Below are positions 835 to 43,016 of a DNA stretch of 43,016 nt, piece by piece. The notes beneath the pieces were generated by a model, which was not told the origin of the DNA, did no database searches, and worked only from the letters and a program-made list of their open reading frames with translations. Numbering within the stretch: position 1 is the stretch's first letter; each line of letters opens with the position of its first letter. Made by a program: the position numbers and the translations under genes. Source of the DNA: Utricularia gibba (lineage: Eukaryota; Plantae; Magnoliophyta); NCBI GenBank assembly GCA_002189035.1, contig NEEC01000054.1, forward strand, positions 1-43,016, in the 5' to 3' direction.

Positions 835-1027
835 GAACAGAAAGACAACCCCATGGGTCATGCAAACTGTAATACCCAGAATTTCATCGGGTTGGGTCCG
901 AACCTGAATGGATCCAACGCAGGCCCATCTCTAATCATAATCATATGATATAGGTTTATTAAATATAAATAATTGAAATACATTATTTATTAAACCGTAG
1001 GATAACTATGAAAGCTTCTTTGACTTA

Positions 1028-1862
1028 ATTATTACCATTTGATCCTCAGTTGTACTTTGGATGGAGTGTGTAGTTTTACTTTAGTTATTTTAATTAGCAT
1101 TCGATCCTTGGTTATGATTCAGATCATATTTGCTATTTTTTTACTTTAAATATTTTTATTATCATTCGATCCGTAAGTATGATGCGGATCGAGCGCGTAT
1201 TTTTTATTTTAATATTTTTATTAGCATTCGAACGTTAGGTATGCTGCGGATCGAGCGTATATTTTTCACTTTCATATTTTTATTAGCCTTAGATCCTTAG
1301 GTATACTTTGGATCGAGTGCATATTCATTTATTTTAAATCTTAATTAGCGTTCGACGTTAGGAGCAATTTAGAACGTGTATACATTACAATGCCATGCCG
1401 CACGTACGGGGTCCACGCGTAAACCACGCCCGTGTCCACACGCTGCAGCACCACAAGGCCACACGGGCGTGGTTTACGCACAACCCACGCCCGTGTGCAT
1501 ACGCTGCAGCACCCCAAGGCCACACGGGCGTGGTTTACGCACAACCCACGCCCGTGTGCCCTGGCAATGTAAACACGCTCCACATTGCTCCTAAGGATCG
1601 AGCGTTAACACAAGTTTCAAGTAAACCATATCCACTCGATCCGAATCATATCTAAAGACCGAAAGCTAATAAAAATATTAAAATAAAAAATATACGCTCG
1701 ATCCGCATCATATCTTAGAATCGAATGCAAATAGAATCGTTCAAATAAAAAATATACACTCGATTGGAATCATAACCAAGGATCGAATGCTAATTAAAAT
1801 GATTAAAATAAAAATGCACACTCCATCCAAAGTATAACTAAGAGTCGAATGCTAATAAAATT
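1028..1862. repeat. ~830-bp degenerate palindrome (foldback) inside each monomer; first copy shown
   Basis: Arms ~1028-1392 and ~1563-1862 are imperfect reverse complements. Examples: TACTTTGGATGGAGTGTG...TTTTAATTAGCATTCGATCCTTGGTTATGATTC (1053-1119) vs its complement at ~1765-1832; TTAGGAGCAATTTAGAACGTGTATACATT vs AATGTAAACACGCTCCACATTGCTCCTAA. The arms are built from AT-rich ~60-bp sub-units. Confidence 0.9.
1417..1557. repeat. 61-bp GC-rich hairpin VNTR at the centre of the palindrome (0, 1 or 2 units per monomer)
   Basis: CCACGCCCGTGT at 1424, 1485, 1546 (period 61). Perfect 19-bp stem GCGTAAACCACGCCCGTGT (1417-1435) / ACACGGGCGTGGTTTACGC (1461-1479) with a 25-nt loop. Monomer lengths fall in steps of ~61 bp. 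A diverged copy of the motif lies at ~625-720. Confidence 0.92.
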
Positions 1863-1971
1863 AAAAACTAAGAAACTTTCACATGTAGTATATGCTTTAA
1901 TAACTAACGTATTTAACATTATTTATAATTTAATAACATATATCACATGATTATAAAAATATTTTTTTTGT

Positions 1972-2219
1972 CATTGTAGAAAGCTCATCACGCCATGTAC
2001 ACCACCCTGGAGAGGTTTCAACAGCAGTCATGAACTCACAACCCTTGCTCAGCAGATTCAGTAAAATTCTCTAACACTTGCGCTTCCAACGGATCATATC
2101 CCATATTCATTCATACGAAATTGTGCAAGAATAATGTGACTTTGAGTTTGAACTAGATAGTAGGACGCTGATCGAAGAATGGCCCATCGAGTCTCTAAAA
2201 TTGCCCGTCCTCGCTCAAC
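1972..2219 (-). pseudogene. Decayed PIF/Harbinger transposase C-terminal fragment (one per monomer, ~14 copies in window; first shown)
   Basis: The minus strand reads VERGRAILETRWAILRSASYYLVQTQSHIILA, frameshift, LHNFV*MNMGYDPLEAQVLE, frameshift, EFMTAVETSPGWCTWRDELSTM. From memory this matches the plant Harbinger DDE_Tnp_4 C-terminus (IERxFGxLKxRWAILRSxSFYPxKTQxxIIxACCLLHNFIRxxMxxDPLE...VETSxEWTxWRDxLAxxM). Stops and frameshifts are present. Confidence 0.82.
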
Positions 2220-3070
2220 AAATGTGGGGTGCACGTGACATCCCAATTTCAACAAATGCATCATGATTTTCGTCGAGTGGGCCCATGAGCCCGACCGAAC
2301 CCGGGGCCGGGCCAAGGGCCCCTCGAGAGCGCCCGCCTCAATACGAGGAGGTGTTCCTTCGAAAACCATATACGCGTCTCGTCACAACCCAACGTTAATA
2401 AATGCATCACTTTTTTTGGCGCGCTACTGCTGACTTTGGGCCCGAGTTCGGCACGACCTCCGGCTCGATCAGGGTGCCCCACCGAGAGCTCCTCCTTAAG
2501 TATAAAGTGTGTTGTTGAAAAAAACCGTGTGCGGTTCTCGTGACATCCTAACTTCAACAAATGCATCACGATTTTCGTCGAGTCGGACGGGACCGGGCTC
2601 CCGGGGCCCGGACGAGGCGCAGCCCGCTCCCCTCCCCCCCAAAACTAGAAGGTGTTCCATGGAAAACCATTTAGGCGGCTCGTGACAACCCAAAGTTAAT
2701 AAATGCATCACTTTCTTTGCCGGGTTACAATGACTTTACGCTCGAGCCTGGTACGACGTATGGGAAGATTCGAGTGCCCCCCGAGAGCGTCTCCACAAGT
2801 ATAAAGCGTGTTGTTGAAAAAACCGTGTTGGGTGCACGTGACATCCTAATTTCAACAAATGCGTCACGATTTTCGCCGAGTGGGACCAGAGTGGGCTCAT
2901 CAGCCAGACCGAACCCGGGGCCCAAGCCAAGGGCCCCTCGAGAGCGCCCCCCACAAAACTAGATGGTGTTCCACGAAAAAAAATTAGGCGGCTCGTGATA
3001 ACCCAACGCTAAGAAATGCATCCCTTTTTTCGCCGGGCTAAAACTGACTTTGGGCTCATGCCCGGCGCGA
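2215..3070 (+). repeat. ~300-bp GC-rich sub-repeat, ~2.8 diverged copies per monomer; first complete set shown
   Basis: GTGACATCC at 2235, 2540 and 2838. Recurring blocks TTCAACAAATGC, AAAACTAGA(A/T)GGTGTTCC, AAATGCATC, GTATAAAG(C/T)GTGTTGTTGAAAAAA. Confidence 0.9.
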
Positions 3071-6000
3071 CCCCCAGCCCGTGTGCATACGCAGCAGCAC
3101 CACGAGGCCACATGGGCTTGGTTAATGCCCGCGTGCTCGAGCAGCAGCCACAAGGCCATACGGCCGTGGAAAAAAGAAAAACAACCATAAAATACAATAA
3201 GCCAAAAAATAAAAAAAAAAATTGATAAACCCTTGGTTCGGTTCGGGCCCAATCAAAACCCGTAGGGTTTAACCCGTTCGGGTTGAACAGAAAGACAACC
3301 CATGGGTCATGCAAACTGTAATACCCAGAATTTCATCGGGTTGGGTCCGAACCTGAATGGATCCAACGCAGGCCCATCTCTAATCATAATCATATGATAT
3401 AGGTTTATTAAATTATAAATAATTGAAATACATTATTTATTAAACCGTAGGATAACTATGAAAGCTTCTTTGACTTAATTATTACCATTTGATCCTCAGT
3501 TGTACTTTGGATGGAGTGTGTAGTTTTACTTTAGTCATTTTAATTAGCATTCGATCCTTGGTTATGATTCAGATCATATTTGCTATTTTTTTACTTTAAA
3601 TATTTTTATTATCATTCGATCCGTAAGTATGATGCGGATCGAGCGCGTATTTTTTTTTTATATTTTTATTAGCATTCGAACGTTAGGTATGCTGCGGATC
3701 GAGCGTATATTTTTCACTTTCATATTTTTATTAGCCTTAGATCCTTAGGTATACTTTGGATCGAGTGCATATTCATTTATTTTAAATCTTAATTAGCGTT
3801 CGACCGTTAGGAGCAATTTAGAACGTGTATACATTACAATGCCATGCCGCACGGACGTGGTCTACGCGTAAACCACGCCCGTGTCCACACGCTGCAGCAC
3901 CACAAGGCCACACGGGCGTGGTTTGCGCACAACCCACGCCCGTGTGCCCTGGCAATGTAAACACGCTCCACATTGCTCCTAAGGATCGAGCGTTAACACA
4001 AGTTTCAAGTAAACCATATCCACTCGATCCGAATCATATCTAAAGACCGAAAGCTAATAAAATATTAAAATAAAAAATATACGCTCGATCCGCATCATAT
4101 CTTAGAATCGAATGCAAATAGAATCGTTCAAATAAAAAATATACACTCGATTGGAATCATAACCAAGGATCGAATGCTAATTAAAATGATTAAAATAAAA
4201 ATGCACACTCCATCCAAAGTATAACTAAGGGTCGAATGCTAATAAAATTAAAAACTAAGAAACTTTCACATGTAGTATATGCTTTAATAACTAACGTATT
4301 TAACATTATTTATAATTTAATAAACATATATCACATGATTATAAAAATTTTTTTTTGTCATTGTAGAAAGCTCATCACGCCATGTACACCCCCTGGAGAG
4401 GTTTCAACAGCAGTCATGAACTCACAACCCTTGCTCAGCAGATTCAGTAAAATTCTCTAACACTTGCGCTTCCAACGGATCATATCCCATATTCATTCAT
4501 ACGAAATTGTGCAAGAATAATGTGACTTTGAGTTTGAACTAGATAGTAGGACGCTGATCGAAGAATGGCCCATCGAGTCTCTAAAATTGGCCGTCCTCGC
4601 TCAACAAATGTGGGGTGCACGTGACATCCCAATTTCAACAAATGCATCATGATTTTCGTCGAGTGGGCCCATGAGCCCGACCGAACCCGGGGCCCGGGCC
4701 AAGGGCCCCTCGAGAGCGCCCGCCTCAATACGAGGAGGTGTTCCTTCGAAAACCATATACGCGTCTCGTCACAACCCAACGTTAATAAATGCATCACTTT
4801 TTTTGGCGCGCTACTGCTGACTTTGGGCCCGAGTTCGGCACGACCTCCGGCTCGATCAGGGTGCCCCACCGAGAGCTCCTCCTTAAGTATAAAGTGTGTT
4901 GTTGAAAAAAACCGTGTGCGGTTCTCGTGACATCCTAACTTCAACAAATGCATCACGATTTTCGTCGAGTCGGACGGGACCGGGCTCCCGGGGCCCGGAC
5001 GAGGCGCAGCGCCCCCCTCCCCTCCCCCCAAAACTAGAAGGTGTTCCATGGAAAACCATTTAGGCGGCTCGTGACAACCCAAAGTTAATAAATGCATCAC
5101 TTTCTTTGCCGGGCTACAATGACTTTACGCTCGAGCCTGGTACGACGTATGGGAAGATTCGAGTGCCCCCCGAGAGCGTCTCCACAAGTATAAAGCGTGT
5201 TGTTGAAAAAACCGTGTTGGGTGCACGTGACATCCTAATTTCAACAAATGCGTCACGATTTTCGCCGATGGGACCATAGTGGGCTCATCAGCCAGACCGA
5301 ACCCGGGGCCCAAGCCAAGGGCCCCTCGAGAGCGCCCCCCACAAAACTAGATGGTGTTCCATGAAAAAAAGTTAGGCGGCTCGTGATAACCCAACGCTAA
5401 GAAATGCATCCATTTTTTCGCCGGGCTAAAACTGACTTTGGGCTCATGCCTGGCGCGACCCCCAGCCCGTGTGCATACGCAGCAGCACCACGAGGCCACA
5501 TGGGCTTGGTTAATGCCAGCGTGCTCGAGCAGCAGCCACAAGGCCATACGGGCGTGGAACAAAGCAAACAATCATAAAATACAATAAGCCAAAAAATAAA
5601 AATAAAATTGATAAACCCTTGGTTCGGTTCGGGCCCAATCAAAACCCGTAGGGTTTAACCCGTTCGGGTTGAATAGAAAGACAACCCCATGGGTCATGCA
5701 AACTGTAATACCCAGAATTTCATCGGGTTGGGTCCGAACCTGAATGGATCCAACGCAGGCCCATCTCTAATCATAATCATATGATATAGGTTTATTAAAT
5801 TATAAATAATTGAAATACATTATTTATTAAACCGTAGGATAACTATGAAAGCTTCTTTGACTTAATTATTACCATTTGATCCTCAGTTGTACTTTGGATG
5901 GAGTGTGTAGTTTTACTTTAGTTATTTTAATTAGCATTCGATCCTTGGTTATGATTCAGATCATATTTGCTATTTTTTTACTTTAAATATTTTTATTATC

Positions 6001-9000
6001 ATTCGATCCGTAAGTATGATGCGGATCGAGCGCGTATTTTTTATTTTAATATTTTTATTAGCATTCGAACGTTAGGTATGCTGCGGATCGAGCGTATATT
6101 TTTCACTTTCATATTTTATTAGCCTTAGATCCTTAGGTATACTTTGGATCGAGTGCATATTCATTTATTTTAAATCTTAATTAGCGTTCGACCGTTAGGA
6201 GCAATTTAGAACGTGTATACATTACAATGCATGCAGCACGTACGGGGTCCACGCGTAAACCACGCCCGTGTCCACACGCTGCAGCACCACAAGGCCACAC
6301 GGGCGTGGTTTACGCACAACCCACGCCCGTGTGCATACGCTGCAGCACCCCAAGGCCACACGGGCGTGGTTTACGCACAACCCACGCCCGTGTGCCCTGG
6401 CAATGTAAACACGCTCCACATTGCTCCTAAGGATCGAGCGTTAACACAAGTTTCAAGTAAACCATATCCACTCGATCCGAATCATATCTAAAGACCGAAA
6501 GCTAATAAAAATATTAAAATAAAAAATATACGCTCGATCCGCATCATATCTTAGAATCGAATGCAAATAGAATCGTTCAAATAAAAAATATACACTCGAT
6601 TGGAATCATAACCAAGGATCGAATGCTAATTAAAATGATTAAAATAAAAATGCACACTCCATCCAAAGTATAACTAAGAGTCGAATGCTAATAAAATTAA
6701 AAACTAAGAAACTTTCACATGTAGTATATGCTTTAATAACTAACGTATTTAACATTATTTATAATTTAATAAACATATATCACATGATTATAAAAATATT
6801 TTTTTTGTCATTGTAGAAAGCTCATCACGCCATGTACACCACCCTGGAGAGGTTTCAACAGCAGTCATGAACTCACAACCCCTTGCTCAGCAGATTCAGT
6901 AAAATTCTCTAACACTTGCGCTTCCAACGGATCATATCCCATATTCATTCATACGAAATTGTGCAAGAATAATGTGACTTTGAGTTTGAACTAGATAGTA
7001 GGACGCTGATCGAAGAATGGCCCATCGAGTCTCTAAAATTGCCCGTCCTCGCTCAACAAATGTGGGGTGCACGTGACATCCCAATTTCAACAAATGCATC
7101 ATGATTTTCGTCGAGTGGGCCCATGAGCCCGACCGAACCCGGGGCCGGGCCAAGGGCCCCTCGAGAGCGCCCGCCTCAATACGAGGAGGTGTTCCTTCGA
7201 AAACCATATACGCGTCTCGTCACAACCCAACGTTAATAAATGCATCACTTTTTTTGGCGCGCTACTGCTGACTTTGGGCCCGAGTTCGGCACGACCTCCG
7301 GCTCGATCAGGGTGCCCCACCGAGAGCTCCTCCTTAAGTATAAAGTGTGTTGTTGAAAAAAACCGTGTGCGGTTCTCGTGACATCCTAACTTCAACAAAT
7401 GCATCACGATTTTCGTCGAGTCGGACGGGACCGGGCTCCCGGGGCCCGGACGAGGCGCAGCGCCCGCTCCCCTTCCCCCCAAAACTAGAAGGTGTTCCAT
7501 GGAAAACCATTTAGGCGGCTCGTGACAACCCAAAGTTAATAAATGCATCACTTTCTTTGCCGGGTTACAATGACTTTACGCTCGAGCCTGGTACGACGTA
7601 TGGGAAGATTCGAGTGCCCCCGAGAGAGCGTCTCCACAAGTATAAAGCGTGTTGTTGAAAAAACCGTGTTGGGTGCACGTGACATCCTAATTTCAACAAA
7701 TGCGTCACGATTTTCGCCGAGTGGGACCAGAGTGGGCTCATCAGCCAGACCGAACCCGGGGCCCAAGCCAAGGGCCCCTCGAGAGCGCCCCCCACAAAAC
7801 TAGATGGTGTTCCACGAAAAAAAATTAGGCGGCTCGTGATAACCCAACGCTAAAATGCATCCCTTTTTTTCGCCGGGCTAAAACTGACTTTGGGCTCATG
7901 CCCGGCGCGACCCCCAGCCCGTGTGCATACGCAGCAGCACCACGAGGCCACATGGGCTTGGTTAATGCCCGCGTGCTCGAGCAGCAGCCACAAGGCCATA
8001 CGGCCGTGGAAAAAAAGAAAAACAACCATAAAATACAATAAGCCAAAAATAAAAAATAAAATTGATAAACCCTTGGTTCGGTTCGGGCCCAATCAAAACC
8101 CGTAGGGTTTAACCCGTTCGGGTTGAACAGAAAGACAACCATGGGTCATGCAAACTGTAATACCCAGAATTCATCGGGTTGGGTCCGAACCTGAATGGAT
8201 CCAACGCAGGCCCATCTCTAATCATAATCATATGATATAGGTTTATTAAATTATAAATAATTGAAATACATTATTTATTAAACCGTAGGATAACTATGAA
8301 AGCTTCTTTGACTTAATTATTACCATTTGATCCTCAGTTGTACTTTGGATGGAGTGTGTAGTTTTACTTTAGTCATTTTAATTAGCATTCGATCCTTGGT
8401 TATGATTCAGATCATATTTGCTATTTTTTACTTTAAATATTTTTATTATCATTCGATCCGTAAGTATGATGCGGATCGAGCGTATTTTTTATTTTATATT
8501 TTTATTAGCATTCGAACGTTAGGTATGCTGCGGATCGAGCGTATATTTTTCACTTTCATATTTTTATTAGCCTTAGATCCTTAGGTATACTTTGGATCGA
8601 GTGCATATTCATTTATTTTAAATCTTAATTAGCGTTCGACCGTTAGGAGCAATTTAGAACGTGTATACATTACAATGCCATGCCGCACGGACGTGGTCTA
8701 CGCGTAAACCACGCCGTGTCCACACGCTGCAGCACACAAGGCCACACGTGTTTCGCACAACCCACGCCCGTGTGCCTGGCAATGTAAACACGCTCCACAT
8801 TGCTCCTAAGGATCGAGCGTTAACACAAGTTTCAAGTAAACCATATCCACTCGATCCGAATCATATCTAAAGACCGAAAGCTAATAAAAATATTAAAATA
8901 AAAAATATACGCTCGATCCGCATCATATCTTAGAATCGAATGCAAATAGAATCGTTCAAATAAAAAATATACACTCGATTGGAATCATAACCAAGGATCG

Positions 9001-12000
9001 AATGCTAATTAAAATGATTAAAATAAAAATGCACACTCCATCCAAAGTATAACTAAGGGTCGAATGCTAATAAAATTAAAAACTAAGAAACTTTCACATG
9101 TAGTATATGCTTTAATAACTAACGTATTTAACATTATTTATAATTTATAATTATATATCACATGATTATAAAAATATTTTTTTTGTCATTGTAGAAAGCT
9201 CATCACGCCATGTACACACCACCCTGGAGAGGTTTCAACAGCAGTCATGAACTCACAACCCTTGCTCAGCAGATTCAGTAAAATTCTCTAACACTTGCGC
9301 TTCCAACGGATCATATCCCATATTCATTCATACGAAATTGTGCAAGAATAATGTGACTTTGAGTTTGAACTAGATAGTAGGACGCTGATCGAAGAATGGC
9401 CCATCGAGTCTCTAAAATTGGCCGTCCTCGCTCAACAAATGTGGGGTGCACGTGACATCCCAATTTCAACAAATGCATCATGATTTTCGTCGAGTGGGCC
9501 CATGAGCCCGACCGAACCCGGGGCCCGGGCCAAGGGCCCCTCGAGAGCGCCCGCCTCAATACGAGGAGGTGTTCCTTCGAAAACCATATACGCGTCTCGT
9601 CACAACCCAACGTTAATAAATGCATCACTTTTTTTGGCGCGCTACTGCTGACTTTGGGCCCGAGTTCGGCACGACCTCCGGCTCGATCAGGGTGCCCACC
9701 GAGAGCTCCTCCTTAAGTATAAAGTGTGTTGTTGAAAAAAACCGTGTGCGGTTCTCGTGACATCCTAACTTCAACAAATGCATCACGATTTTCGTCGAGT
9801 CGGACGGGACCGGGCTCCCGGGGCCCGGACGAGGCGCAGCGCCCGCTCCCCTTCCCCCAAAACTAGAAGGTGTTCCATGGAAAACCATTTAGGCGGCTCG
9901 TGACAACCCAAAGTTAATAAATGCATCACTTTCTTTGCCGGGTTACAATGACTTTACGCTCGAGCCTGGTACGACGTATGGGAAGATTCGAGTGCCCCCC
10001 GAGAGCGTCTCCACAAGTATAAAGCGTGTTGTTGAAAAAACCGTGTTGGGTGCACGTGACATCCTAATTTCAACAAATGCGTCACGATTTTCGCCGAGTG
10101 GGACCAGAGTGGGCTCATCAGCCAGACCGAACCCGGGGCCCAAGCCAAGGGCCCCTCGAGAGCGCCCCCCCCACAAAACTAGATGGTGTTCCACGAAAAA
10201 AATTAGGCGGCTCGTGATAACCCAACGCTAAGAAATGCATCCCTTTTTTTCGCCGGGCTAAAACTGACTTTGGGCTCATGCCCGGCGCGACCCCCAGCCC
10301 GTGTGCATACGCAGCAGCACCACGAGGCCACATGGGCTTGGTTAATGCCCGCGTGCTCGAGCAGCAGCCACAAGGCCATACGGCCGTGGAAAAAAAGAAA
10401 AACAACCATAAAATACAATAAGCCAAAAATAAAAAATAAAATTGATAAACCCTTGGTTCGGTTCGGGCCCAATCAAAACCCGTAGGGTTTAACCCGTTCG
10501 GGTTGAACAGAAAGACAACCCCATGGGTCATGCAAACTGTAATACCCAGAATTTCATCGGGTTGGGTCCGAACCTGAATGGATCCAACGCAGGCCCATCT
10601 CTAATCATAATCATATGATATAGGTTTATTAAATTATAAATAATTGAAATACATTATTTATTAAACCGTAGGATAACTATGAAAGCTTCTTTGACTTAAT
10701 TATTACCATTTGATCCTCAGTTGTACTTTGGATGGAGTGTGTAGTTTTACTTTAGTCATTTTAATTAGCATTCGATCCTTGGTTATGATTCAGATCATAT
10801 TTGCTATTTTTTTACTTTAAATATTTTTATTATCATTCGATCCTTAAGTATGATGCGGATCGAGCGCGTATTTTTTATTTTAATATTTTTTATTAGCATT
10901 CGAACGTTAGGTATGCTGCGGATCGAGCGTATATTTTTCACTTCATATTTTTATTAGCCTTAGATCCTTAGGTATACTTTGGATCGAGTGCATATTCATT
11001 TATTTTAAATCTTAATAAGCGTTCGACCGTTAGGAGCAATTTAGAACGTGTATACATTACAATGCCATGCAGCACGTACGGGGTCACGCGTAAACCACGC
11101 CCGTGTCCACACGCTGCAGCACCACAAGGCCACACGGGCGTGGTTTACGCACAACCCACGCCCGTGTGCATACGCTGCAGCACCCCAAGGCCACACGGGC
11201 GTGGTTTACGCACAACCCACGCCCGTGTGCCCTGGCAATGTAAACACGCTCCACATTGCTCCTAAGGATCGAGCGTTAACACAAGTTTCAAGTAAACCAT
11301 ATCCACTCGATCCGAATCATATCTAAAGACCGAAAGCTAATAAAAATATTAAAATAAAAAATATACGCTCGATCCGCATCATATCTTAGAATCGAATGCA
11401 AATAGAATCGTTCAAATAAAAAATATACACTCGATTGGAATCATAACCAAGGATCGAATGCTAATTAAAATGATTAAAATAAAAATGCACACTCCATCCA
11501 AAGTATAACTAAGGGTCGAATGCTAATAAAATTAAAAACTAAGAAACTTTCACATGTAGTATATGCTTTAATAACTAACGTATTTAACATTATTTATAAT
11601 TTAATAAACATATATCACATGATTATAAAAATATTTTTTTTGTCATTGTAGAAAGCTCATCACGCCATGTACACCACCCTGGAGAGGTTTCAACAGCAGT
11701 CATGAACTCACAACCCCTTGCTCAGCAGATTCAGTAAAATTCTCTAACACTTGCGCTTCCAACGGATCATATCCCATATTCATTCATACGAAATTGTGCA
11801 AGAATAATGTGACTTTGAGTTTGAACTAGATAGTAGGACGCTGATCGAAGAATGGCCCATCGAGTCTCTAAAATTGGCCGTCCTCGCTCAACAAATGTGG
11901 GGTGCACGTGACATCCCAATTTCAACAAATGCATCATGATTTTCGTCGAGTGGGCCCATGAGCCCGACCGAACCCGGGGCCCGGGCCAAGGGCCCCTCGA

Positions 12001-15000
12001 GAGCGCCCGCCTCAATACGAGGAGGTGTTCCTTCGAAAACCATATACGCGTCTCGTCACAACCCAACGTTAATAAATGCATCACTTTTTTTGGCGCGCTA
12101 CTGCTGACTTTGGGCCCGAGTTCGGCACGACCTCCGGCTCGATCAGGGTGCCCCACCGAGAGCTCCTCCTTAAGTATAAAGTGTGTTGTTGAAAAAAACC
12201 GTGTGCGGTTCTCGTGACATCCTAACTTCAACAAATGCATCACGATTTTCGTCGAGTCGGACGGGACCGGGCTCCCGGGGCCCGGACGAGGCGCAGCACC
12301 CGCTCCCCTCCCCCCCAAAACTAGAAGGTGTTCCATGGAAAACCATTTAGGCGGCTCGTGACAACCCAAAGTTAATAATGCATCACTTTCTTTGCCGGGC
12401 TACAATGACTTTACGCTCGAGCCTGGTACGACGTATGGGAAGATTCGAGTGCCCCCCGAGAGCGTCTCCACAAGTATAAAGCGTGTTGTTGAAAAAACCG
12501 TGTTGGGTGCACGTGACATCCTAATTTCAACAAATGCGTCACGATTTTCGCCGATGGGACCAGACTGGGCTCATCAGCCAGACCGAACCCGGGGCCCAAG
12601 CCAAGGGCCCCTCGAGAGCGCCCCCCCACAAAACTAGATGGTGTTCCATGAAAAAAAGTTAGGCGGCTCGTGATAACCCAACGCTAAGAAATGCATCCAT
12701 TTTTTCGCCGGGCTAAAACTGACTTTGGGCTCATGCCGGCGCGACCCCCAGCCCGTGTGCATACGCAGCAGCACCACGAGGCCACATGGGCTTGGTTAAT
12801 GCCGCGTGCTCGAGCAGCAGCCACAAGGCCATACGGCGTGGAACAAAGCAAACAATCATAAAATACAATAAGCCAAAAATAAAAAATAAAATTGATAAAC
12901 CCTTGGTTCGGTTCGGGCCCAATCAAAACCCGTAGGGTTTAACCCGTTCGGGTTGAACAGAAAGACAACCCCATGGGTCATGCAAACTGTAATACCCAGA
13001 ATTTCATCGGGTTGGGTCCGAACCTGAATGGATCCAACGCAGGCCCATCTCTAATCATAATCATATGATATAGGTTTATTAAATTATAAATAATTGAAAT
13101 ACATTATTTATTAAACCGTAGGATAACTATGAAAGCTTCTTTGACTTAATTATTACCATTTGATCCTCAGTTGTACTTTGGATGGAGTGTGTAGTTTTAC
13201 TTTAGTTATTTTAATTAGCATTCGATCCTTGGTTATGATTCAGATCATATTTGCTATTTTTTTACTTTAAATATTTTTATTATCATTCGATCCGTAAGTA
13301 TGATGCGGATCGAGCGCGTATTTTTTATTTTAATATTTTTATTAGCATTCGAACGTTAGGTATGCTGCGGATCGAGCGTATATTTTTCACTTTCATATTT
13401 TTATTAGCCTTAGATCCTTAGGTATACTTTGGATCGAGTGCATATTCATTTATTTTAAATCTTAATTAGCGTTCGACCGTTAGGAGCAATTTAGAACGTG
13501 TATACATTACAATGCCATGCCGCACGGACGGGTCTACGCGTAAACCACGCCCGTGTCCACACGCTGCAGCACCACAAGGCCACACGGGCGTGGTTTACGC
13601 ACAACCCACGCCCGTGTGCATACGCTGCAGCACCCCAAGGCCACACGGGCGTGGTTTACGCACAACCCACGCCCGTGTGCCCTGGCAATGTAAACACGCT
13701 CCACATTGCTCCTAAGGATCGAGCGTTAACACAAGTTTCAAGTAAACCATATCCACTCGATCCGAATCATATCTAAAGACCGAAAGCTAATAAAAATATT
13801 AAAATAAAAAATATACGCTCGATCCGCATCATATCTTAGAATCGAATGCAAATAGAATCGTTCAAATAAAAAATATACACTCGATTGGAATCATAACCAA
13901 GGATCGAATGCTAATTAAATGATTAAAATAAAAATGCACACTCCATCCAAAGTATAACTAAGAGTCGAATGCTAATAAAATTAAAAACTAAGAAACTTTC
14001 ACATGTAGTATATGCTTTAATAACTAACGTATTTAACATTATTTATAATTTAATAAACATATATCACATGATTATAAAAATATTTTTTTTGTCATTGTAG
14101 AAAGCTCATCACGCCATGTACACCACCCTGGAGAGGTTTCAACAGCAGTCATGAACTCACAACCCCTTGCTCAGCAGATTCAGTAAAATTCTCTAACACT
14201 TGCGCTTCCAACGGATCATATCCCATATTCATTCATACGAAATTGTGCAAGAATAATGTGACTTTGAGTTTGAACTAGATAGTAGGACGCTGATCGAAGA
14301 ATGGCCCATCGAGTCTCTAAAATTGCCGTCCTCGCTCAACAAATGTGGGGTGCACGTGACATCCCAATTTCAACAAATGCATCATGATTTTCGTCGAGTG
14401 GGCCCATGAGCCCGACCGAACCCGGGGCCCGGGCCAAGGGCCCCTCGAGAGCGCCCGCCTCAATACGAGGAGGTGTTCCTTCGAAAACCATATACGCGTC
14501 TCGTCACAACCCAACGTTAATAAATGCATCACTTTTTTTGGCGCGCTACTGCTGACTTTGGGCCCGAGTTCGGCACGACCTCCGGCTCGATCAGGGTGCC
14601 CCCCCGAGAGCTCCTCCTTAAGTATAAAGTGTGTTGTTGAAAAAAACCGTGTGCGGTTCTCGTGACATCCTAACTTCAACAAATGCATCACGATTTTCGT
14701 CGAGTCGGACGGGACCGGGCTCCCGGGGCCCGGACGAGGCGCAGCGCCCGCTCCCCTCCCCCCAAAACTAGAAGGTGTTCCATGGAAAACCATTTAGGCG
14801 GCTCGTGACAACCCAAAGTTAATAAATGCATCACTTTCTTTGCCGGGCTACAATGACTTTACGCTCGAGCCTGGTACGACGTATGGGAAGATTCGAGTGC
14901 CCCCCGAGAGCGTCTCCACAAGTATAAAGCGTGTTGTTGAAAAAACCGTGTTGGGTGCACGTGACATCCTAATTTCAACAAATGCGTCACGATTTCGCCG

Positions 15001-18000
15001 AGTGGGACCAGAGTGGGCTCATCAGCCAGACCGAACCCGGGGCCCAAGCCAAGGGCCCCTCGAGAGCGCCCCCCCACAAAACTAGATGGTGTTCCACGAA
15101 AAAAAATTAGGCGGCTCGTGATAACCCAACGCTAAGAAATGCATCCCTTTTTTCGCCGGGCTAAAACTGACTTTGGGCTCATGCCCGGCGCGACCCCAGC
15201 CCGTGTGCATACGCAGCAGCACCACGAGGCCACATGGGCTTGGTTAATGCCCGCGTGCTCGAGCAGCAGCCACAAGGCCATACGGCGTGGAACAAAGCAA
15301 ACAATCATAAAATACAATAAGCCAAAAATAAAAAATAAAATTGATAAACCCTTGGTTCGGTTCGGGCCCAATCAAAACCCGTAGGGTTTAACCCGTTCGG
15401 GTTGAACAGAAAGACAACCCCATGGGTCATGCAAACTGTAATACCCAGAATTTCATCGGGTTGGGTCCGAACCTGAATGGATCCAACGCAGGCCCATCTC
15501 TAATCATAATCATATGATATAGGTTTATTAAATTATAAATAATTGAAATACATTATTTATTAAACCGTAGGATAACTATGAAAGCTTTTTGACTTAATTA
15601 TTACCATTTGATCCTCAGTTGTACTTTGGATGGAGTGTGTATTTTACTTTAGTCATTTTAATTAGCATTCGATCCTTGGTTATGATTCAGATCATATTTG
15701 CTATTTTTTTACTTTAAATATTTTTATTATCATTCGATCCGTAAGTATGATGCGGATCGAGCGCGTATTTTTTATTTTAATATTTTTATTAGCATTCGAA
15801 CGTTAGGTATGCTGCGGATCGAGCGTATATTTTTCACTTCATATTTTTATTAGCCTTAGATCCTTAGGTATACTTTGGATCGAGTGCATATTCATTTATT
15901 TTAAATCTTAATTAGCGTTCCACCGTTAGGAGCAATTTAGAACGTGTATACATTACAATGCCATGCCACACGGGCGTGGTTTACGCACAACCCACACCCG
16001 TGTGCCCTTGCAATGTAAACACGCTCCACATTGCTCCTAAGGATCGAGCGTTAACACAAGTTTCAAGTAAACCATCTCCACTCGATCCGAATCATATCTA
16101 AAGACCGAAAGCTAATAAAATATTAAAATAAAAAATATACGCTCGATCCGCATCATATCTTAGAATCGAATGCAAATAGAATCGTTCAAATAAAAAATAT
16201 ACACTCGATTGGAATCATAACCAAGGATCGAATGCTAATTAAAATGATTAAAATAAAAATGCACACTCCATCCAAAGTATAACTAAGGGTCGAATGCTAA
16301 TAAAATTAAAAACTAAGAAACTTTCACATGTAGTATATGCTTTAATAACTAACGTATTTAACATTATTTATAATTTAATAAACATATATCACATGATTAT
16401 AAAAATATTTTTTTTGTCATTGTAGAAAGCTCATCACGCCATGTACACCACCCTGGAGAGGTTTCAACAGCAGTCATGAACTCACAACCCCTTGCTCAGC
16501 AGATTCAGTAAAATTCTCTAACACTTGCGCTTCCAACGGATCATATCCCATATTCATTCATACGAAATTGTGCAAGAATAATGTGACTTTGAGTTTGAAC
16601 TAGATAGTAGGACGCTGATCGAAGAATGGCCCATCGAGTCTCTAAAATTGGCCGTCCTCGCTCAACAAATGTGGGGTGCACGTGACATCCCAATTTCAAC
16701 AAATGCATCATGATTTTCGTCGAGTGGGCCCATGAGCCCGACCGAACCCGGGGCCCGGGCCAAGGGCCCCTCGAGAGCGCCCGCCTCAATACGAGGAGGT
16801 GTTCCTTCGAAAACCATATACGCGTCTCGTCACAACCCAACGTTAATAAATGCATCACTTTTTTTGGCGCGCTACTGCTGACTTTGGGCCCGAGTTCGGC
16901 ACGACCTCCGGCTCGATCAGGGTGCCCCCGAGAGCTCCTCCTTAAGTATAAAGTGTGTTGTTGAAAAAAACCGTGTGCGGTTCTCGTGACATCCTAACTT
17001 CAACAAATGCATCACGATTTTCGTCGAGTCGGACGGGACCGGGCTCCCGGGGCCCGGACGAGGCGCAGCCCGCTCCCCTCCCCCCAAAACTAGAAGGTGT
17101 TCCATGGAAAACCATTTAGGCGGCTCGTGACAACCCAAAGTTAATAATGCATCACTTTCTTTGCCGGGCTACAATGACTTTACGCTCGAGCCTGGTACGA
17201 CGTATGGGAAGATTCGAGTGCCCCCCGAGAGCGTCTCCACAAGTATAAAGCGTGTTGTTGAAAAAAACCGTGTTGGGTGCACGTGACATCCTAATTTCAA
17301 CAAATGCGTCACGATTTTCGCCGATGGGACCATAGTGGGCTCATCAGCCAGACCGAACCCGGGGCCCAAGCCAAGGGCCCCTCGAGAGCGCCCCCCCACA
17401 AAACTAGATGGTGTTCCATGAAAAAAAATTAGGCGGCTCGTGATAACCCAACGCTAAGAAATGCATCCATTTTTTCGCCGGGCTAAAACTGACTTTGGGC
17501 TCATGCCGGCGCGACCCCCAGCCCGTGTGCATACGCAGCAGCACCACGAGGCCACATGGGCTTGGTTAATGCCCGCGTGCTCGAGCAGCAGCCACAAGGC
17601 CATACGGGCGTGGAACAAAGCAAACAATCATAAAATACAATAAGCCAAAAATAAAAAATAAAATTGATAAACCCTTGGTTCGGTTCGGGCCCAATCAAAA
17701 CCCGTAGGGTTTAACCCGTTCGGGTTGAACAGAAAGACAACCCCATGGGTCATGCAAACTGTAATACCCAGAATTTCATCGGGTTGGGTCCGAACCTGAA
17801 TGGATCCAACGCAGGCCCATCTCTAATCATAATCATATGATATAGGTTTATTAAATTATAAATAATTGAAATACATTATTTATTAAACCGTAGGATAACT
17901 ATGAAAGCTTCTTTGACTTAATTATTACCATTTGATCCTCAGTTGTACTTTGGATGGAGTGTGTAGTTTTACTTTAGTTATTTTAATTAGCATTCGATCC

Positions 18001-21000
18001 TTGGTTATGATTCAGATCATATTTGCTATTTTTTTACTTTAAATATTTTATTATCATTCGATCCGTAAGTATGATGCGGATCGAGCGCGTTTTTTATTTT
18101 AATATTTTATTAGCATTCGAACGTTAGGTATGCTGCGGATCGAGCGTATATTTTTCACTTTCATATTTTTATTAGCCTTAGATCCTTAGGTATACTTTGG
18201 ATCGAGTGCATATTCATTTATTTTAAATCTTAATTAGCGTTCGACCGTTAGGAGCAATTTAGAACGTGTATACATTACAATGCCATGCCGCACGGACGGG
18301 GTCACGCGTAAACCACGCCCGTGTCCACACGCTGCAGCACCACAAGGCCACACGGGCGTGGTTTACGCACAACCCACGCCCGTGTGCATACGCTGCAGCA
18401 CCCCAAGGCCACACGGGCGTGGTTTACGCACAACCCACGCCCGTGTGCCCTGGCAATGTAAACACGCTCCACATTGCTCCTAAGGATCGAGCGTTAACAC
18501 AAGTTTCAAGTAAACCATATCCACTCGATCCGAATCATATCTAAAGACCGAAAGCTAATAAAAATATTAAAATAAAAAATATACGCTCGATCCGCATCAT
18601 ATCTTAGAATCGAATGCAAATAGAATCGTTCAAATAAAAAATATACACTCGATTGGAATCATAACCAAGGATCGAATGCTAATTAAAATGATTAAAATAA
18701 AAATGCACACTCCATCCAAAGTATAACTAAGGTCGAATGCTAATAAAATTAAAAACTAAGAAACTTTCACATGTAGTATATGCTTTAATAACTAACGTAT
18801 TTAACATTATTTATAATTTAATAAACATATATCACATGATTATAAAAAATATTTTTTTTGTCATTGTAGAAAGCTCATCACGCCATGTACACCACCCTGG
18901 AGAGGTTTCAACAGCAGTCATGAACTCACAACCCCTTGCTCAGCAGATTCAGTAAAATTCTCTAACACTTGCGCTTCCAACGGATCATATCCCATATTCA
19001 TTCATACGAAATTGTGCAAGAATAATGTGACTTTGAGTTTGAACTAGATAGTAGGACGCTGATCGAAGAATGGCCCATCGAGTCTCTAAAATTGGCCGTC
19101 CTCGCTCAACAAATGTGGGGTGCACGTGACATCCCAATTTCAACAAATGCATCATGATTTTCGTCGAGTGGGCCCATGAGCCCGACCGAACCCGGGCCCG
19201 GGCCAAGGGCCCCTCGAGAGCGCCCGCCTCAATACGAGGAGGTGTTCCTTCGAAAACCATATACGCGTCTCGTCACAACCCAACGTTGCATCACTTTTTT
19301 TGGCGCGCTACTGCTGACTTTGGGCCCGAGTTCGGCACGACCTCCGGCTCGATCAGGGTGCCCCACCGAGAGCTCCTCCTTAAGTATAAAGTGTGTTGTT
19401 GAAAAAAACCGTGTGCGGTTCTCGTGACATCCTAACTTCAACAAATGCATCACGATTTTCGTCGAGTCGGACGGGACCGGGCTCCCGGGCCCGGACGAGG
19501 CGCAGCACCCGCTCCCCTCCCCCCCAAAACTAGAAGGTGTTCCATGGAAAACCATTTAGGCGGCTCGTGACAACCCAAAGTTAATAAATGCATCACTTTC
19601 TTTGCCGGGCTACAATGACTTTACGCTCGAGCCTGGTACGACGTATGGGAAGATTCGAGTGCCCCCGAGAGCGTCTCCACAAGTATAAAGCGTGTTGTTG
19701 AAAAAACCGTGTTGGGTGCACGTGACATCCTAATTTCAACAAATGCGTCACGATTTTCGCCGATGGGACCATACTGGGCTCATCAGCCAGACCGAACCCG
19801 GGGCCCAAGCCAAGGGCCCCTCGAGAGCGCCCCCCCACAAAACTAGATGGTGTTCCATGAAAAAAAGTTAGGCGGCTCGTGATAACCCAACGCTAAGAAA
19901 TGCATCCATTTTTTCGCCGGGCTAAAACTGACTTTGGGCTCATGCCTGGCGCGACCCCCAGCCCGTGTGCATACGCAGCAGCACCACGAGGCCACATGGG
20001 CTTGGTTAATGCCGCGTGCTCGAGCAGCAGCCACAAGGCCATACGGGCGTGGAACAAAGCAAACAATCATAAAATACAATAAGCCAAAAATAAAAAATAA
20101 AATTGATAAACCCTTGGTTCGGTTCGGGCCCAATCAAAACCCGTAGGGTTTAACCCGTTCGGGTTGAACAGAAAGACAACCCCATGGGTCATGCAAACTG
20201 TAATACCCAGAATTTCATCGGGTTGGGTCCGAACCTGAATGGATCCAACGCAGGCCCATCTCTAATCATAATCATATGATATAGGTTTATTAAATTATAA
20301 ATAATTGAAATACATTATTTATTAAACCGTAGGATAACTATGAAAGCTTCTTTGACTTAATTATTACCATTTGATCCTCAGTTGTACTTTGGATGGAGTG
20401 TGTAGTTTTACTTTAGTTATTTTAATTAGCATTCGATCCTTGGTTATGATTCAGATCATATTTGCTATTTTTTTACTTTAAATATTTTTATTATCATTCG
20501 ATCCGTAAGTATGATGCGGATCGAGCGCGTATTTTTTATTTTAATATTTTTATTAGCATTCGAACGTTAGGTATGCTGCGGATCGAGCGTATATTTTTCA
20601 CTTTCATATTTTTATTAGCCTTAGATCCTTAGGTATACTTTGGATCGAGTGCATATTCATTTATTTTAAATCTTAATTAGCGTTCGACCGTTAGGAGCAA
20701 TTTAGAACGTGTATACATTACAATGCCATGCCGCACGGACGGGGTCTACGTGTAAACCACGCCCGTGTCCACACGCTGCAGCACCACAAGGCCACACGGG
20801 CGTGGTTTACGCACAACCCACGCCCGTGTGCATACGCTGCAGCACCCCAAGGCCACACGGGCGTGGTTTACGCACAACCCACGCCCGTGTGCCCTGGCAA
20901 TGTAAACACGCTCCACATTGCTCCTAAGGATCGAGCGTTAACACAAGTTTCAAGTAAACCATATCCACTCGATCCGAATCATATCTAAAGACCGAAAGCT

Positions 21001-24000
21001 AATAAAAATATTAAAATAAAAAATATACGCTCGATCCGCATCATATCTTAGAATCGAATGCAAATAGAATCGTTCAAATAAAAAATATACACTCGATTGG
21101 AATCATAACCAAGGATCGAATGCTAATTAAAATGATTAAAATAAAAATGCACACTCCATCCAAAGTATAACTAAGAGTCGAATGCTAATAAAATTAAAAA
21201 CTAAGAAACTTTCACATGTAGTATATGCTTTAATAACTAACGTATTTAACATTATTTATAATTTAATAAACATATATCACATGATTATAAAAATATTTTT
21301 TTTGTCATTGTAGAAAGCTCATCACGCCATGTACACCACCCTGGAGAGGTTTCAACAGCAGTCATGAACTCACAACCCCTTGCTCAGCAGATTCAGTAAA
21401 ATTCTCTAACACTTGCGCTTCCAACGGATCATATCCCATATTCATTCATACGAAATTGTGCAAGAATAATGTGACTTTGAGTTTGAACTAGATAGTAGGA
21501 CGCTGATCGAAGAATGGCCCATCGAGTCTCTAAAATTGGCCGTCCTCGCTCAACAAATGTGGGGTGCACGTGACATCCCAATTTCAACAAATGCATCATG
21601 ATTTTCGTCGAGTGGGCCCATGAGCCCGACCGAACCCGGGGCCCGGGCCAAGGGCCCCTCCAGAGCGCCCGCCTCAATACGAGGAGGTGTTCCTTCGAAA
21701 ACCATATACGCGTCTCGTCACAACCCAACGTTAATAAATGCATCACTTTTTTTGGCGCGCTACTGCTGACTTTGGGCCCGAGTTCGGCACGACCTCCGGC
21801 TCGATCAGGGTGCCCCACCGAGAGCTCCTCCTTAAGTATAAAGTGTGTTGTTGAAAAAAACCGTGTGCGGTTCTCGTGACATCCTAACTTCAACAAATGC
21901 ATCACGATTTTCGTCGAGTCGGACGGGACCGGGCTCCCGGGGCCCGTACGAGGCGCAGCACCCGCTCCCCTCCCCCCCAAAACTAGAAGGTGTTCCATGG
22001 AAAACCATTTAGGCGGCTCGTGACAACCCAAAGTTAATAAATGCATCACTTTCTTTGCCGGGCTACAATGACTTTACGCTCGAGCCTGGTACGACGTATG
22101 GGAAGATTCGAGTGCCCCCGAGAGCGTCTCCAATGGTATAAAGCGTGTTGTTGAAAAAACCGTGTTGGGTGCACGTGACATCCTAATTTCAACAAATGCG
22201 TCACGATTTTCGCCGAGTGGGACCAGAGTGGGCTCATCAGCCAGACCGAACCCGGGGCCCAAGCCAAGGGCCCCTCGAGAGCGCCCCCCCACAAAACTAG
22301 ATGGTGTTCCATGAAAAAAAGTTAGGCGGCTCGTGATAACCCAACGCTAAGAAATGCATCCATTTTTTCGCCGGGCTAAAACTGACTTTGGGCTCATGCC
22401 CGGCGCGACCCCCAGCCCGTGTGCATACGCAGCAGCACCACGAGGCCACATGGGCTTGGTTAATGCCCGCGTGCTCGAGCAGCAGCCACAAGGCCATACG
22501 GGCGTGGAACAAAGCAAACAATCATAAAATACAATAGGCCAAAAATAAAAAATAAAATTGATAAACCCTTGGTTCGGTTCGGGCCCAATCAAAACCCGTA
22601 GGGTTTAACCCGTTCGGGTTGAACAGAAAGACAACCCCATGGGTCATGCAAACTGTAATACCCAGAATTTCATCGGGTTGGGTCCGAACCTGAATGGATC
22701 CAACGCAGGCCCATCTCTAATCATAATCATATGATATATGTTTATTAAATTATAAATAATTGAAATACATTATTTATTAAACCGTAGGATAACTATGAAA
22801 GCTTCTTTGACTTAATTATTACCATTTGATCCTCAGTTGTACTTTGGATGGAGTGTGTAGTTTTACTTTAGTCATTTTAATTAGCATTCGATCCTTGGTT
22901 ATGATTCAGATCATATTTGCTATTTTTTTACTTTAAATATTTTTATTATCATTCGATCCGTAAGTATGATGCGGATCGAGCGCGTATTTTTTATTTTCAT
23001 ATTTTTATTAGCATTCGAGCGTTAGGTATGCTGCGGATCGAGCGTATATTTTTCACTTTCATATTTTTATTAGCCTTAGATCCTTAGGTATACTTTGGAT
23101 CCAGTGCATATTCATTTATTTTAAATCTTAATTAGCGTTCGACCGTTAGGAGCAATTTAGAACGTGTATACATTACAATGCCATGCCGCACGGACGTGGT
23201 CTACGCGTAAACCACGCCCGTGTCCACACGCTGCAGCACCACAAGGCCACACGGGCGTGGTTTGCGCACAACCCATGCCCGTGTGCATACGCTGCAGCAC
23301 CCCAAGGCCACACGGGCGTGGTTTACGCACAACCCACGCCCGTGTGCCCTGGCAATGTAAACACGCTCCACATTGCTCCTAAGGATCGAGCGTTAACACA
23401 AGTTTCAAGTAAACCATATCCACTCGATCCGAATCATATCTAAAGACCGAAAGCTAATAAAAATATTAAAATAAAAAAATATACGCTCGATCCGCATCAT
23501 ATCTTAGAATCGAATGCAAATAGAATCGTTCAAATAAAAAATATACACTCGATTGGAATCATAACCAAGGATCGAATGCTAATTAAAATGATTAAAATAA
23601 AAATGCACACTCCATCCAAAGTATAACTAAGGGTCGAATGCTAATAAAATTAAAAACTAAGAAACTTTCACATGTAGTATATGCTTTAATAACTAACGTA
23701 TTTAACATTATTTATAATTTAATAAACATATATCACATGATTATAAAAATATTTTTTTGTCATTGTAGAAAGCTCATCACGCCATGTACACCACCCTGGA
23801 GAGGTTTCAACAGCAGTCATGAACTCACAACCCCTTGCTCAGCAGATTCAATAAAATTCTCTAACACTTGCGCTTCCAACGGATCATATCCCATATTCAT
23901 TCATACGAAATTGTGCAAGAATAATGTGACTTTGAGTTTGAACTAGATAGTAGGACGCTGATCGAAGAATGGCCCATCGAGTCTCTAAAATTGGCCGTCC

Positions 24001-25403
24001 TCGCTCAACAAATGTGGGGTGCACGTGACATCCCAATTTCAGCAAATGCATCATGATTTTCGTCGAGTGGGCCCATGAGCCCGACCGAACCCGGGGCCCG
24101 GGCCAAGGGCCCCTCGAGAGCGCCCGCCTCAATATGAGGAGGTGTTCCTTTGAAAACCATATACGCGTCTCGTCACAACCCAACGTTAATAAATGCATCA
24201 CTTTTTTTGGCGCGCTACTGCTGACTTTGGGCCCGAGTTCGGCACGACCTCCGGCTCGATCAGGGTGCCCCACCGAGAGCTCCTCCTTAAGTATAAAGTG
24301 TGTTGTTGAAAAAAACCGTTTGCGGTTCTCGTGACATCCTAACTTCAACAAATGCATCACGATTTTCGTCGAGTCGGACGGGACCGGGCTCCCGGGGCCC
24401 GGACGAGGCGCAGCGCCCGCTCCCCTCCCCCCAAAACTAGAAGGTGTTCCATGGAAAACCATTTAGGCGGCTCGTGACAACCCAAAGTTAATAAATGCAT
24501 CACTTTCTTTGCCGTGCTACAATGACTTTACGCTCGAGCCTGGTACGACGTATGGGAAGATTCGAGTGCCCCCCGAGAGCGTCTCCACAAGTATAAAGCG
24601 TGTTGTTGAAAAAACCGTGTTGGGTGCACGTGATATCCTAATTTCAACAAATGCGTCACGATTTTCGCCGAGTGGGACCAGACTGGGCTCATCAGCCAGA
24701 CCGAACCCGGGGCCAAGCCAAGGGCCCCTCGAGAGCGCCCCCCACAAAACTAGATGGTGTTCCATGAAAAAAAGTTAGGCGGCTCGTGATAACCCAACGC
24801 TAAGAAATGCATCCATTTTTTCGCCGGGCTAAAACTGACTTTGGGCTCATGCCCGGCGCGACCCCCAGCCCGTGTGCATACGCAGCAGCAGCACGAGGCC
24901 ACATGGGATTGGTTTATGCCCGCGTGCTCGAGCAGCAGCCACAAGGCCATACGGGCGTGGAACAAAGCAAACAATCATAAAATACAATAAGCCAAAAATA
25001 AAAAATAAAATTGATAAACCCTTGGTTCGGTTCGGGCCCAATCAAAACCCGTCGGGTTAACCCATTCGGGTCATGCAAACTGTAATACCCAGAATTTCAT
25101 CGGGTTGGGTCCGAACCTGAATGGATCCAACCCAGGCCCATCTCTAATCATAATCATATGATATAGGTTTATTAAATTATAAATAATTGAAATACATTAT
25201 TTATTAAACCGTAGGATAACTATGAAAGCTTTTTTGACTTAATTATTATCATTTCATCCTCAGTTGTACTTTGGATGGAGTGTGTGTTTTTACTTTAGTC
25301 ATTTTAATTAGCATTCGATCCTTGGTTATGATTTAGATCATATTTACTATTTTTTTTATTTTAATATTGTTTTTAGCATTCGAACGTTAGGTTTAATATT
25401 TTT

Positions 25404-28557: not shown

Positions 28558-28661
28558 ATAGTGTCAGGGTTAAAATACGACCCTTGTTTTCGGTTGAAGA
28601 GCAGTCCACCTATTCATCGGTTTGTGTGTGGTACTGGATCACCAGGGCTGTCTTCATGGGT

Positions 28662-28712
28662 TGGGCCTCTGATGTTGCTTCTTGGGCCAGCTGTCTTGAG
28701 TGTTGAGGCCCA
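28662..28712 (+). promoter_or_regulatory. Three site II elements (TGGGCY) in the NOP56 proximal promoter
   Basis: TGGGCC at 28662-28667 and 28683-28688, GGCCCA at 28707-28712, ~175-225 bp upstream of the ATG. Site II clusters are characteristic of plant ribosome-biogenesis and translation gene promoters. Confidence 0.6.
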
Positions 28713-28885
28713 AGGATGTTAAGGCCTTTCTCACAGTCTAATCGAGGGCTGCTTCTCCTGGAGGGAGCAGAGGTGTGCGGCGTTCTTCTTCGCGAGTTGA
28801 GACTTCCCGGATCTTCGCTGCTCCATCATTCGCTGACAGGACACCGCAGCCTCCAGTAAGCCACTGCCTTCTCGGGCCGTCGTCG

Positions 28886-42963: not shown

Positions 42964-43016
42964 GGGTTTAGGGTTTCGGTTTAGGGTTTAGGGTTTAGGG
43001 TTTAGGGTTTAGGGTT
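42960..43016 (+). repeat. Arabidopsis-type telomere repeat (TTTAGGG)n
   Basis: TATAGGG, TTTAGGG, TTTCGG, then (TTTAGGG)x5 + TT to the window end. The G-rich strand points toward the end, as expected at a right chromosome terminus. Only 57 bp are visible. Confidence 0.93.

Follow-up and report, generated by a model that had tools for sequence, protein, structure and literature searches.

A fossil PIF/Harbinger transposase C-terminus in the units of a subtelomeric macrosatellite of Utricularia gibba

Introduction

In Utricularia gibba, the contig NEEC01000054.1 carries a long tandem repeat in whose monomer the terminal part of a plant PIF/Harbinger transposase had been predicted from the letters of the sequence. 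Such a finding raises the question of how a piece of a transposase gene came to stand in the units of a satellite, that is, whether the satellite itself descends from a transposable element (TE), whether the piece was inserted repeatedly or copied along with its surroundings, and whether it serves any function at present. These questions were addressed for the whole stretch of 43,016 nt, here referred to as the window, by translation, tblastn, blastn and profile searches of the candidate region and of its copies. The candidate region is called the fossil in the following, and its three reading-frame segments are called pieces 1 to 3 (Table 1).

Organization of the chromosome end

The 43-kb window represents a plant chromosome end, which terminates in telomere repeats and otherwise consists nearly entirely of a tandem repeat with a unit length of about 2.4 kb. 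In the head-to-tail arrangement of a long unit and in an identity of 97-99% within a subtype, this repeat has the organization of a satellite. Two monomer subtypes of about 2387 and about 2450 bp were observed, and a comparison of positions 3750-4050 with 1300-1660 attributes the main difference to one 61-bp repeat unit at the centre of a palindrome, which looks like the kind of loss or gain at the centre that long palindromes typically undergo. The unit with the highest divergence, at about 92-93% identity, is the last one before the telomere, as if the terminal unit had escaped homogenisation. This last unit (42434-42963) is cut at unit position 533, and the telomere repeat is attached to it directly. 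The gene island is bordered (28557/28558 and 32501/32502) by one inverted unit at unit position 341 and by the next one at unit position 2080; hence, the island takes the place of approximately 650 bp of satellite that would hold one fossil copy. No family was detected at threshold in an Rfam scan of the window.

Table 1. Features of the window, of the repeat unit (given for the first complete occurrence) and of the transposase fossil.
Feature	Position	Strand	Description	Evidence
Forward satellite units	1-25383		10.5 consecutive units; unit length 2325-2457 bp	
Inverted partial satellite unit	27126-28557			
Gene island	28558-32501		interrupts the array	
Inverted satellite units	32502-38842		about 2.7 units	
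Forward satellite units	38882-42963		about 1.7 units; run straight into the telomere	
Telomere repeat (TTTAGGG)n	42962..43016	+	eight TAGGGTT units; directly joined to a truncated monomer	
Palindrome	937..1954		1018 bp; in every monomer; arms of 62-bp sub-repeats, centre of 61-bp hairpin repeats	
GC-rich sub-repeats of about 300 bp	2223..3071		nearly 3 units; take the place of the gene's upstream three quarters	
10-mer TCAACAAATG	2215..2224	+	spans the junction of fossil and sub-repeat; repeated at 2249-2258	
Piece 1: VERGRAILETRWAILRSASYYLVQTQSHIILA	2124..2219	-	holds the Glu of the RNVIER motif	P0003 residues 85-116, 72% identity
Frameshift 1: TTGCA	2124..2128	-	in both tblastn segment ends; 14 of 14 copies identical here	
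Piece 2: LHNFV*MNMGYDPLEAQVLENFTESAEQG	2042..2128	-		P0003 residues 120-146, 81% identity
In-frame stop TGA	2111..2113	-	LHNFV*MNM versus LHNFVRMNM in P0003; 14 of 14 copies	
Frameshift 2	2038..2047	-	one-base shift between pieces 2 and 3	
Piece 3: EFMTAVETSPGWCTWRDELSTMTKKIFL*	1954..2037 (frame with stop, 1951..2037)	-	tail motif at the extreme C-terminus of plant Harbinger transposases	
Fossil copy 1	1951..2219	-	about the last 90 codons; three frames; stop TAA 1951-1953	translations, tblastn with P0003, profile
Fossil copy 2	4359..4605	-		blastn, 99.2%
Fossil copy 3	6809..7057	-		blastn, 99.6%
Fossil copy 4	9187..9436	-		blastn, 98.8%
Fossil copy 5	11644..11892	-		blastn
Fossil copy 6	14093..14340	-	additional 1-nt loss near start	blastn, alignment, tblastn
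Fossil copy 7	16418..16666	-		blastn
Fossil copy 8	18862..19110	-		blastn
Fossil copy 9	21306..21554	-		blastn
Fossil copy 10	23761..24009	-		blastn
Fossil copy 11	34337..34585	+	inverted block; additional stop, RW -> R*	
Fossil copy 12	36793..37041	+	inverted block; same additional stop as copy 11	
Fossil copy 13	39980..40228	-	same additional stop as copies 11 and 12	
Fossil copy 14	42434..42672	-	nearest to the telomere, most diverged (92%); 10-nt loss within piece 2	

Besides the fossil, the unit comprises a palindrome and a set of GC-rich sub-repeats. The 61-bp unit at the centre of the palindrome is itself a hairpin (CCACGCCCGTGTG...CACACGGGCGTGG). Since the palindrome arms are about 79% alike and the monomers 97-99%, the palindrome must be far older than the array. 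Its outer edge (1954) is situated 1 nt before the stop codon of the fossil, and as this edge coincides with the end of the coding region, the right arm may well represent the 3' non-coding part of the transposase gene itself; for the left arm, either a duplication in inverted orientation or the 5' end of an adjacent element could then be envisaged. Neither a TTA/TAA target-site duplication nor a recognisable Harbinger terminal repeat was found at the outer ends or at the centre of the palindrome.

Further repeats occur outside the palindrome. A diverged extra copy of the 61-bp motif (CCCGTGTGCATACGCAGCAGCACCACGAGGCCACATGGGC...) is located at 3070-3170, between the 300-bp sub-repeats and an AT-rich spacer. 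An inverted repeat of 13 nt (GGTTCGGGCCCAA / TTGGGTCCGAACC), whose arms stand 88 nt apart, was observed within 3240-3353, where approximately 0.02 occurrences are expected by chance. Its left end (CCTTGGTTCGGTT) loosely resembles the terminal repeats of Tourist/PIF elements, with no TAA/TTA duplication seen, and the inverted repeat may be the remnant of a small MITE present in every unit.

Identification of the transposase C-terminus

An exhaustive phmmer search with piece 1, as a 54-residue query, against 1.84 billion proteins yielded three matches at E values of about 2-4e-4, namely P0001, P0002, and P0003. The top match, P0001, is a repetitive protein without a transposase domain and was set aside as spurious. 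P0002 is a Sesamum latifolium protein of 329 aa and P0003 a protein of 146 aa from a Logan contig, and Pfam assigns DDE_Tnp_4 (PF13359) to them at 3.9e-19 and 2.5e-13, respectively, as well as Plant_tran. The fossil agrees nearly literally with the sequence of P0003 (...NVIERAWGILKTRWAILRSASYYPVQTLSRIIFACALLHNFVRMNMAYDPLEAEVSEKFTESAE), both across the first frameshift and across the stop. P0003 is the closest relative; in tblastn, its residues 85-116 align to 2219..2124 (72%) and its residues 120-146 to 2128..2048 (81%) with a joint E value of 1e-16. Named relatives of P0003 belong mostly to the Lamiales and share 70% identity or less, and a metagenome scan with P0003 retrieved distant relatives only (L001-L004, 41-53% identical).

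Approximately 220 plant Harbinger proteins were gathered by two word searches with P0002 and P0003 as seeds. The fossil is matched by all of them (221 of 221), with 131 proteins matching all three pieces and 118 matching them in collinear order. Piece 3 (EFMTAVETSPGWCTWRDELST) aligns to the extreme C-terminal tails of 62 relatives, e.g., EFVSSIETSTAWTAWRDELAS and EYVDQVESSPMWTNWRDELA. A custom profile of 402 positions, which was built from 39 full-length relatives and searched against all 2688 stop-free fragments of the window, matches the fossil copies collinearly at profile positions 305-344 (piece 1, E 2.8e-10), 348-367, and 370-393; the only other matches are four rows at chance level (E 5.6-8.3) in the gene island, at 28598-31757. 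Copy 1, read through with an X inserted at every one of its three breaks, aligns over profile positions 306-393 of 402 with 84.5 bits (E 2.7e-28), and shuffling the read-through residues 2000 times gave no score above 2.9 bits.

The lack of any frameshift-aware match to Harbinger or PIF transposases had been named in the original prediction as its refutation; such matches are present both in tblastn and in the read-through. Together with the 118 collinear relatives, these two results confirm the predicted C-terminus of a plant Harbinger nuclease, beginning at the motif with the Glu (IER/VER) and amplified about 14 times. The comparison with PF13359, which had been proposed as a check, gave a divided outcome. 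In hmmscan, neither the three stop-free pieces nor the 91-aa open reading frame (ORF) match PF13359 directly, even at E 10, the only hit being a sub-threshold match to EF_assoc_2 that was taken as chance, whereas the relatives P0002 and P0003 do match this family. Piece 1 aligns to a part of P0003 that covers roughly the last 40 of the 158 positions of the PF13359 model. Due to the null result of the direct scan, the assignment to DDE_Tnp_4 is based on the Pfam-matching relatives and on the custom profile.

A word-indexed protein search with the 206-aa ORF of copy 2, limited to its last 49 residues, returned no candidate, which carries little weight in view of the length band and the word requirement of this search. 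In case of the 61-bp repeat (1469-1519, plus strand), a weak resemblance to the Harbinger protein motif KPTPI..DC.DPR was considered as a second transposase fragment, but with tblastn E values of 0.004-0.05 and no counterpart in the profile search it was put down to chance. Outside the fossil, no credible match to a Myb/SANT-like ORF1 was found by tblastn, which included fusion proteins with PF12776, and no other part of a transposase was detected in the unit by tblastn or by the profile search of the window fragments. The fossil is described as the last quarter of a transposase, derived from this family; it is neither a functional member nor a gene.

Structure and lesions of the fossil

All peptides quoted in the original prediction were located by translation on the minus strand, at 1951-2258, in three different frames, of which the first yields a peptide that ends in ...FVERGRAILETRWAILRSASYYLVQTQSHIILA (2219..2124, minus strand). 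Homology begins at V-E-R (2219-2211), which aligns to I-E-R of the relatives, and does not reach upstream beyond 2219/2220; the junction of the fossil with the 300-bp sub-repeat lies at 2220-2224. The Glu of this VER/IER motif, which we take to be the third residue of the DDE triad, as it is generally regarded, is kept in 38 of the 39 full-length relatives. Harbinger transposases possess a conserved DDE triad that is required (PMC4671723, PMC2836001). In the fossil, the triad is incomplete, with the Glu (VER, 2211-2219) present and the region that holds both Asp residues (e.g., YYLCD) missing. As the DNA upstream of 2220-2224 consists of the GC-rich sub-repeat of about 300 bp, approximately 300 codons including those of both Asp residues are gone. 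When the alignment was extended beyond VER in the upstream direction, into HLLKLGCHVHPTF, the tblastn score did not increase, and the DNA there is the 300-bp sub-repeat as well. A duplicated 10-mer, TCAACAAATG, had been predicted at this junction. The duplication is real and its second copy was placed correctly at 2249-2258, but the first copy occupies 2215-2224 instead of 2214-2223.

At the first frameshift, the net loss amounts to 14 nt, composed of the missing P0003 residues C-A-L and a 5-nt overlap of the two tblastn segments (TTGCA, 2124-2128). If the ancestor read xTT GCA ... ... ... TTG CAC for (F/L)-A-C-x-L-L-H, two TTGCA words would have been located 14 nt apart, and slippage between two such words would, by this arithmetic, give the present sequence. 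A deletion between short direct repeats, as originally proposed, hence fits the 14-nt net loss at TTGCA, with the ancestral sequence taken from our reconstruction. For the in-frame stop at 2111-2113, a change of CGA to TGA is plausible. The site of the second frameshift includes a run of G residues (2042-2044), which has three G in copies 1, 2, and 4 and four G in all others, and the frame is restored by neither length. Since the linker between pieces 2 and 3 comprises only 5-7 residues in the relatives, no large deletion is required here. The frame ends with the TAA at 1951-1953, six codons past the last aligned residue and with nine profile positions remaining, which indicates that the natural end of the gene is present.

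A blastn search with 1972-2219 (248 bp) against the window detected exactly 14 copies, each in a separate unit of about 2.4 kb, with identities of 92-100%. With respect to the query, ten copies are in forward orientation (1972...24009), followed by two inverted and again two forward copies. In the alignment of the 14 copies, every copy shows the same cut at VER, the same loss of 14 nt, and the same TGA stop, and all copies are out of frame before the tail. Copies 11, 12, and 13 share private changes, among them TGG to TGA as well as several substitutions, and thus the two inverted units and the next forward unit form one sub-lineage, which is consistent with a recent fold-back duplication near the chromosome end. 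In comparison with the distal blocks, the fossil reaches an identity of 96.8-97.6% and whole monomers about 97%, so that the fossil is not better conserved than the rest of the unit.

Origin and amplification of the fossil

Taking these observations together, we are confident that the fossil is the dead, 5'-truncated remnant of a PIF/Harbinger transposase gene that was situated in DNA which later became the unit of a subtelomeric macrosatellite, and that it was passively copied from then on. In this scenario, about the last 90 codons of such a gene, beginning with the RNVIER Glu and closing with the natural stop, would have been left in the DNA of the future unit, and the fragment would have been broken before the unit multiplied. 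Because the same cut, the same 14-nt loss, the same TGA, and a break of the frame before the tail occur in 14 of 14 copies, the fragment was presumably dead before amplification. As every unit holds this fragment with identical main lesions, it was amplified with the unit and not inserted repeatedly. Copying together with the unit may have proceeded by unequal exchange, replication slippage, or break-induced or fold-back replication at the chromosome end; an unstable end would be in keeping with the inverted blocks of the window. An active enzyme cannot be encoded, since the sequence lacks the two catalytic Asp residues together with the entire N-terminal three quarters. Judged from the sequence, a passive passenger without evidence of a present function would be the default reading.

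The share of the unit that is demonstrably derived from a transposon amounts to about 250 of about 2400 bp (about 10%). Of the TE origin of the macrosatellite that had been predicted, the part concerning the monomer holds, as the monomer carries the fossil, whereas a descent of the satellite as a whole from a TE does not follow from a unit of which approximately a tenth has been traced. The unit is built from at least three older parts, namely the tail of a Harbinger gene, the palindrome of 62-bp repeats, and the GC-rich 300-bp repeats, and its amplification took place after the unit had been assembled and recently enough for the copies to be 97-99% alike. The fossil provides a dated marker of how the present subtelomeric macrosatellite formed.

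An alternative that attributes far more of the array to the transposon regards the whole 2.4-kb unit as a non-autonomous Harbinger derivative with long inverted ends, repeated head to tail. The palindrome would then mark the place where one element with its long 3' end meets the long 5' end of its neighbour, the 62-bp repeats would be subterminal, and the satellite would be wholly TE-derived. A precedent is given by VaccSat7, in which tandem units near the 3' end of a Harbinger element gave rise to a satellite (PMC7290377). The inverted repeat indeed starts where the coding region ends, as is to be expected of a gene's 3' non-coding region, and the greater age of the palindrome relative to the array is in agreement with this explanation, but no TTA/TAA duplication or recognisable Harbinger terminal repeat was seen at the outer ends and the centre of the palindrome, and neither a Myb-like ORF1 nor another transposase part was found in the unit. 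Moreover, typical terminal inverted repeats of plant Harbinger elements measure tens of bases, and the palindrome arms with about 450 bases are beyond this range. We therefore consider an origin of the whole unit from a Harbinger derivative rather unlikely. Its most far-reaching form is improbable: the entire unit would be a rearranged, long-ended Harbinger derivative, the chromosome end would have been built by head-to-tail multiplication of a DNA transposon, and the array, with its inverted blocks, might feed small RNAs directed against Harbinger copies of the genome.

It had also been put forward, as a speculation, that small RNAs from the satellite could target Harbinger elements or domesticated genes of the ALP1/HDP type in trans; in this case, the fossil might be kept because it serves to silence them. 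Plant subtelomeric satellites commonly give rise to 24-nt small RNAs, and the inverted blocks of the array could yield double-stranded RNA. A sequence kept for such a function is difficult to reconcile with the lack of extra conservation of the fossil relative to the rest of the unit. Furthermore, the closest relative shares 72-81% and the named relatives among the matches listed share about 41-59% protein identity over the main piece, and at these values long perfect nucleotide matches to ALP1/HDP-type genes would be unlikely. On the grounds of these identities, silencing of ALP1/HDP-type genes in trans appears unlikely; closer Harbinger copies might exist elsewhere in the genome. Overall, we regard a retention of the fossil for silencing as highly improbable. 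The remaining explanation, according to which short peptides of a repetitive DNA match transposases by chance, has next to no probability: the null Pfam scan of the pieces and the marginal E value of a single piece (about 3e-4 among 1.8 billion proteins) could be read in its favour, but it is refuted by tblastn, collinearity, and the shuffles, as 118 independent relatives match the three pieces in order with their C-termini, the 84.5 bits compare with no more than 2.9 bits in 2000 shuffles, and a stretch of 27 residues is 81% identical to P0003.

Comparison with known TE-derived satellites

With PIF/Harbinger transposases, domesticated ALP1, and HARBI1-like proteins, the fossil shares the Glu of RNVIER, LHNF, DPLE, and the W..WRD.LA tail. 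It differs from PIF/Harbinger transposases by consisting of the last quarter only, by two frameshifts and a stop, and by the absence of both catalytic Asp residues. Among the satellites with which the array can be compared, Sobo of Solanum bulbocastanum is presumably not subtelomeric. In general, any part of a TE can seed a tandem repeat, with non-coding and terminal parts prevailing (PMC9659126). Cases from coding regions in the same source are a gag fragment (rye E3900), fragments of LINE ORF2, and the "Tnp2 TPase" region of the CACTA element Jozin in Chenopodium. Harbinger elements are absent from PMC9659126, including its table of cases, and from PMC12628747; for Vaccinium, they are described with regard to non-coding terminal repeats (PMC7290377).

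The satellite VaccSat7 of Vaccinium, which originates from tandem units near the 3' end of a non-autonomous Harbinger element (PMC7290377), resembles the array described here in that a plant satellite is traced to PIF/Harbinger and to sequence near the 3' end of the element. Its monomers are non-coding tandem units inside mobile Harbinger copies with TAA/TTA duplications (PMC7290377). Unlike VaccSat7, the array of U. gibba contains a coding remnant of the transposase that accounts for about 10% of a composite unit of 2.4 kb, and neither a target-site duplication nor a mobile copy was observed. According to Table 1 of PMC9659126, CficCl-61-40 of Chenopodium, related to the CACTA-like Jozin, is likewise a plant satellite tied to the transposase region ("Tnp2 TPase") of a DNA transposon, but CACTA is another superfamily. 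According to the same table, Sobo with its LTR fragment and rye E3900 with its partial gag frame agree with the array in that a TE fragment makes up one component of the unit, and they differ in that the fragment stems from an LTR retrotransposon and not from a DNA transposon.

A Harbinger coding remnant within a 2.4-kb subtelomeric unit therefore is a new example of a known phenomenon. It leaves the general understanding of satellites and Harbinger elements unchanged and adds, to the cases listed above, a satellite that carries a coding remnant of a DNA transposon.
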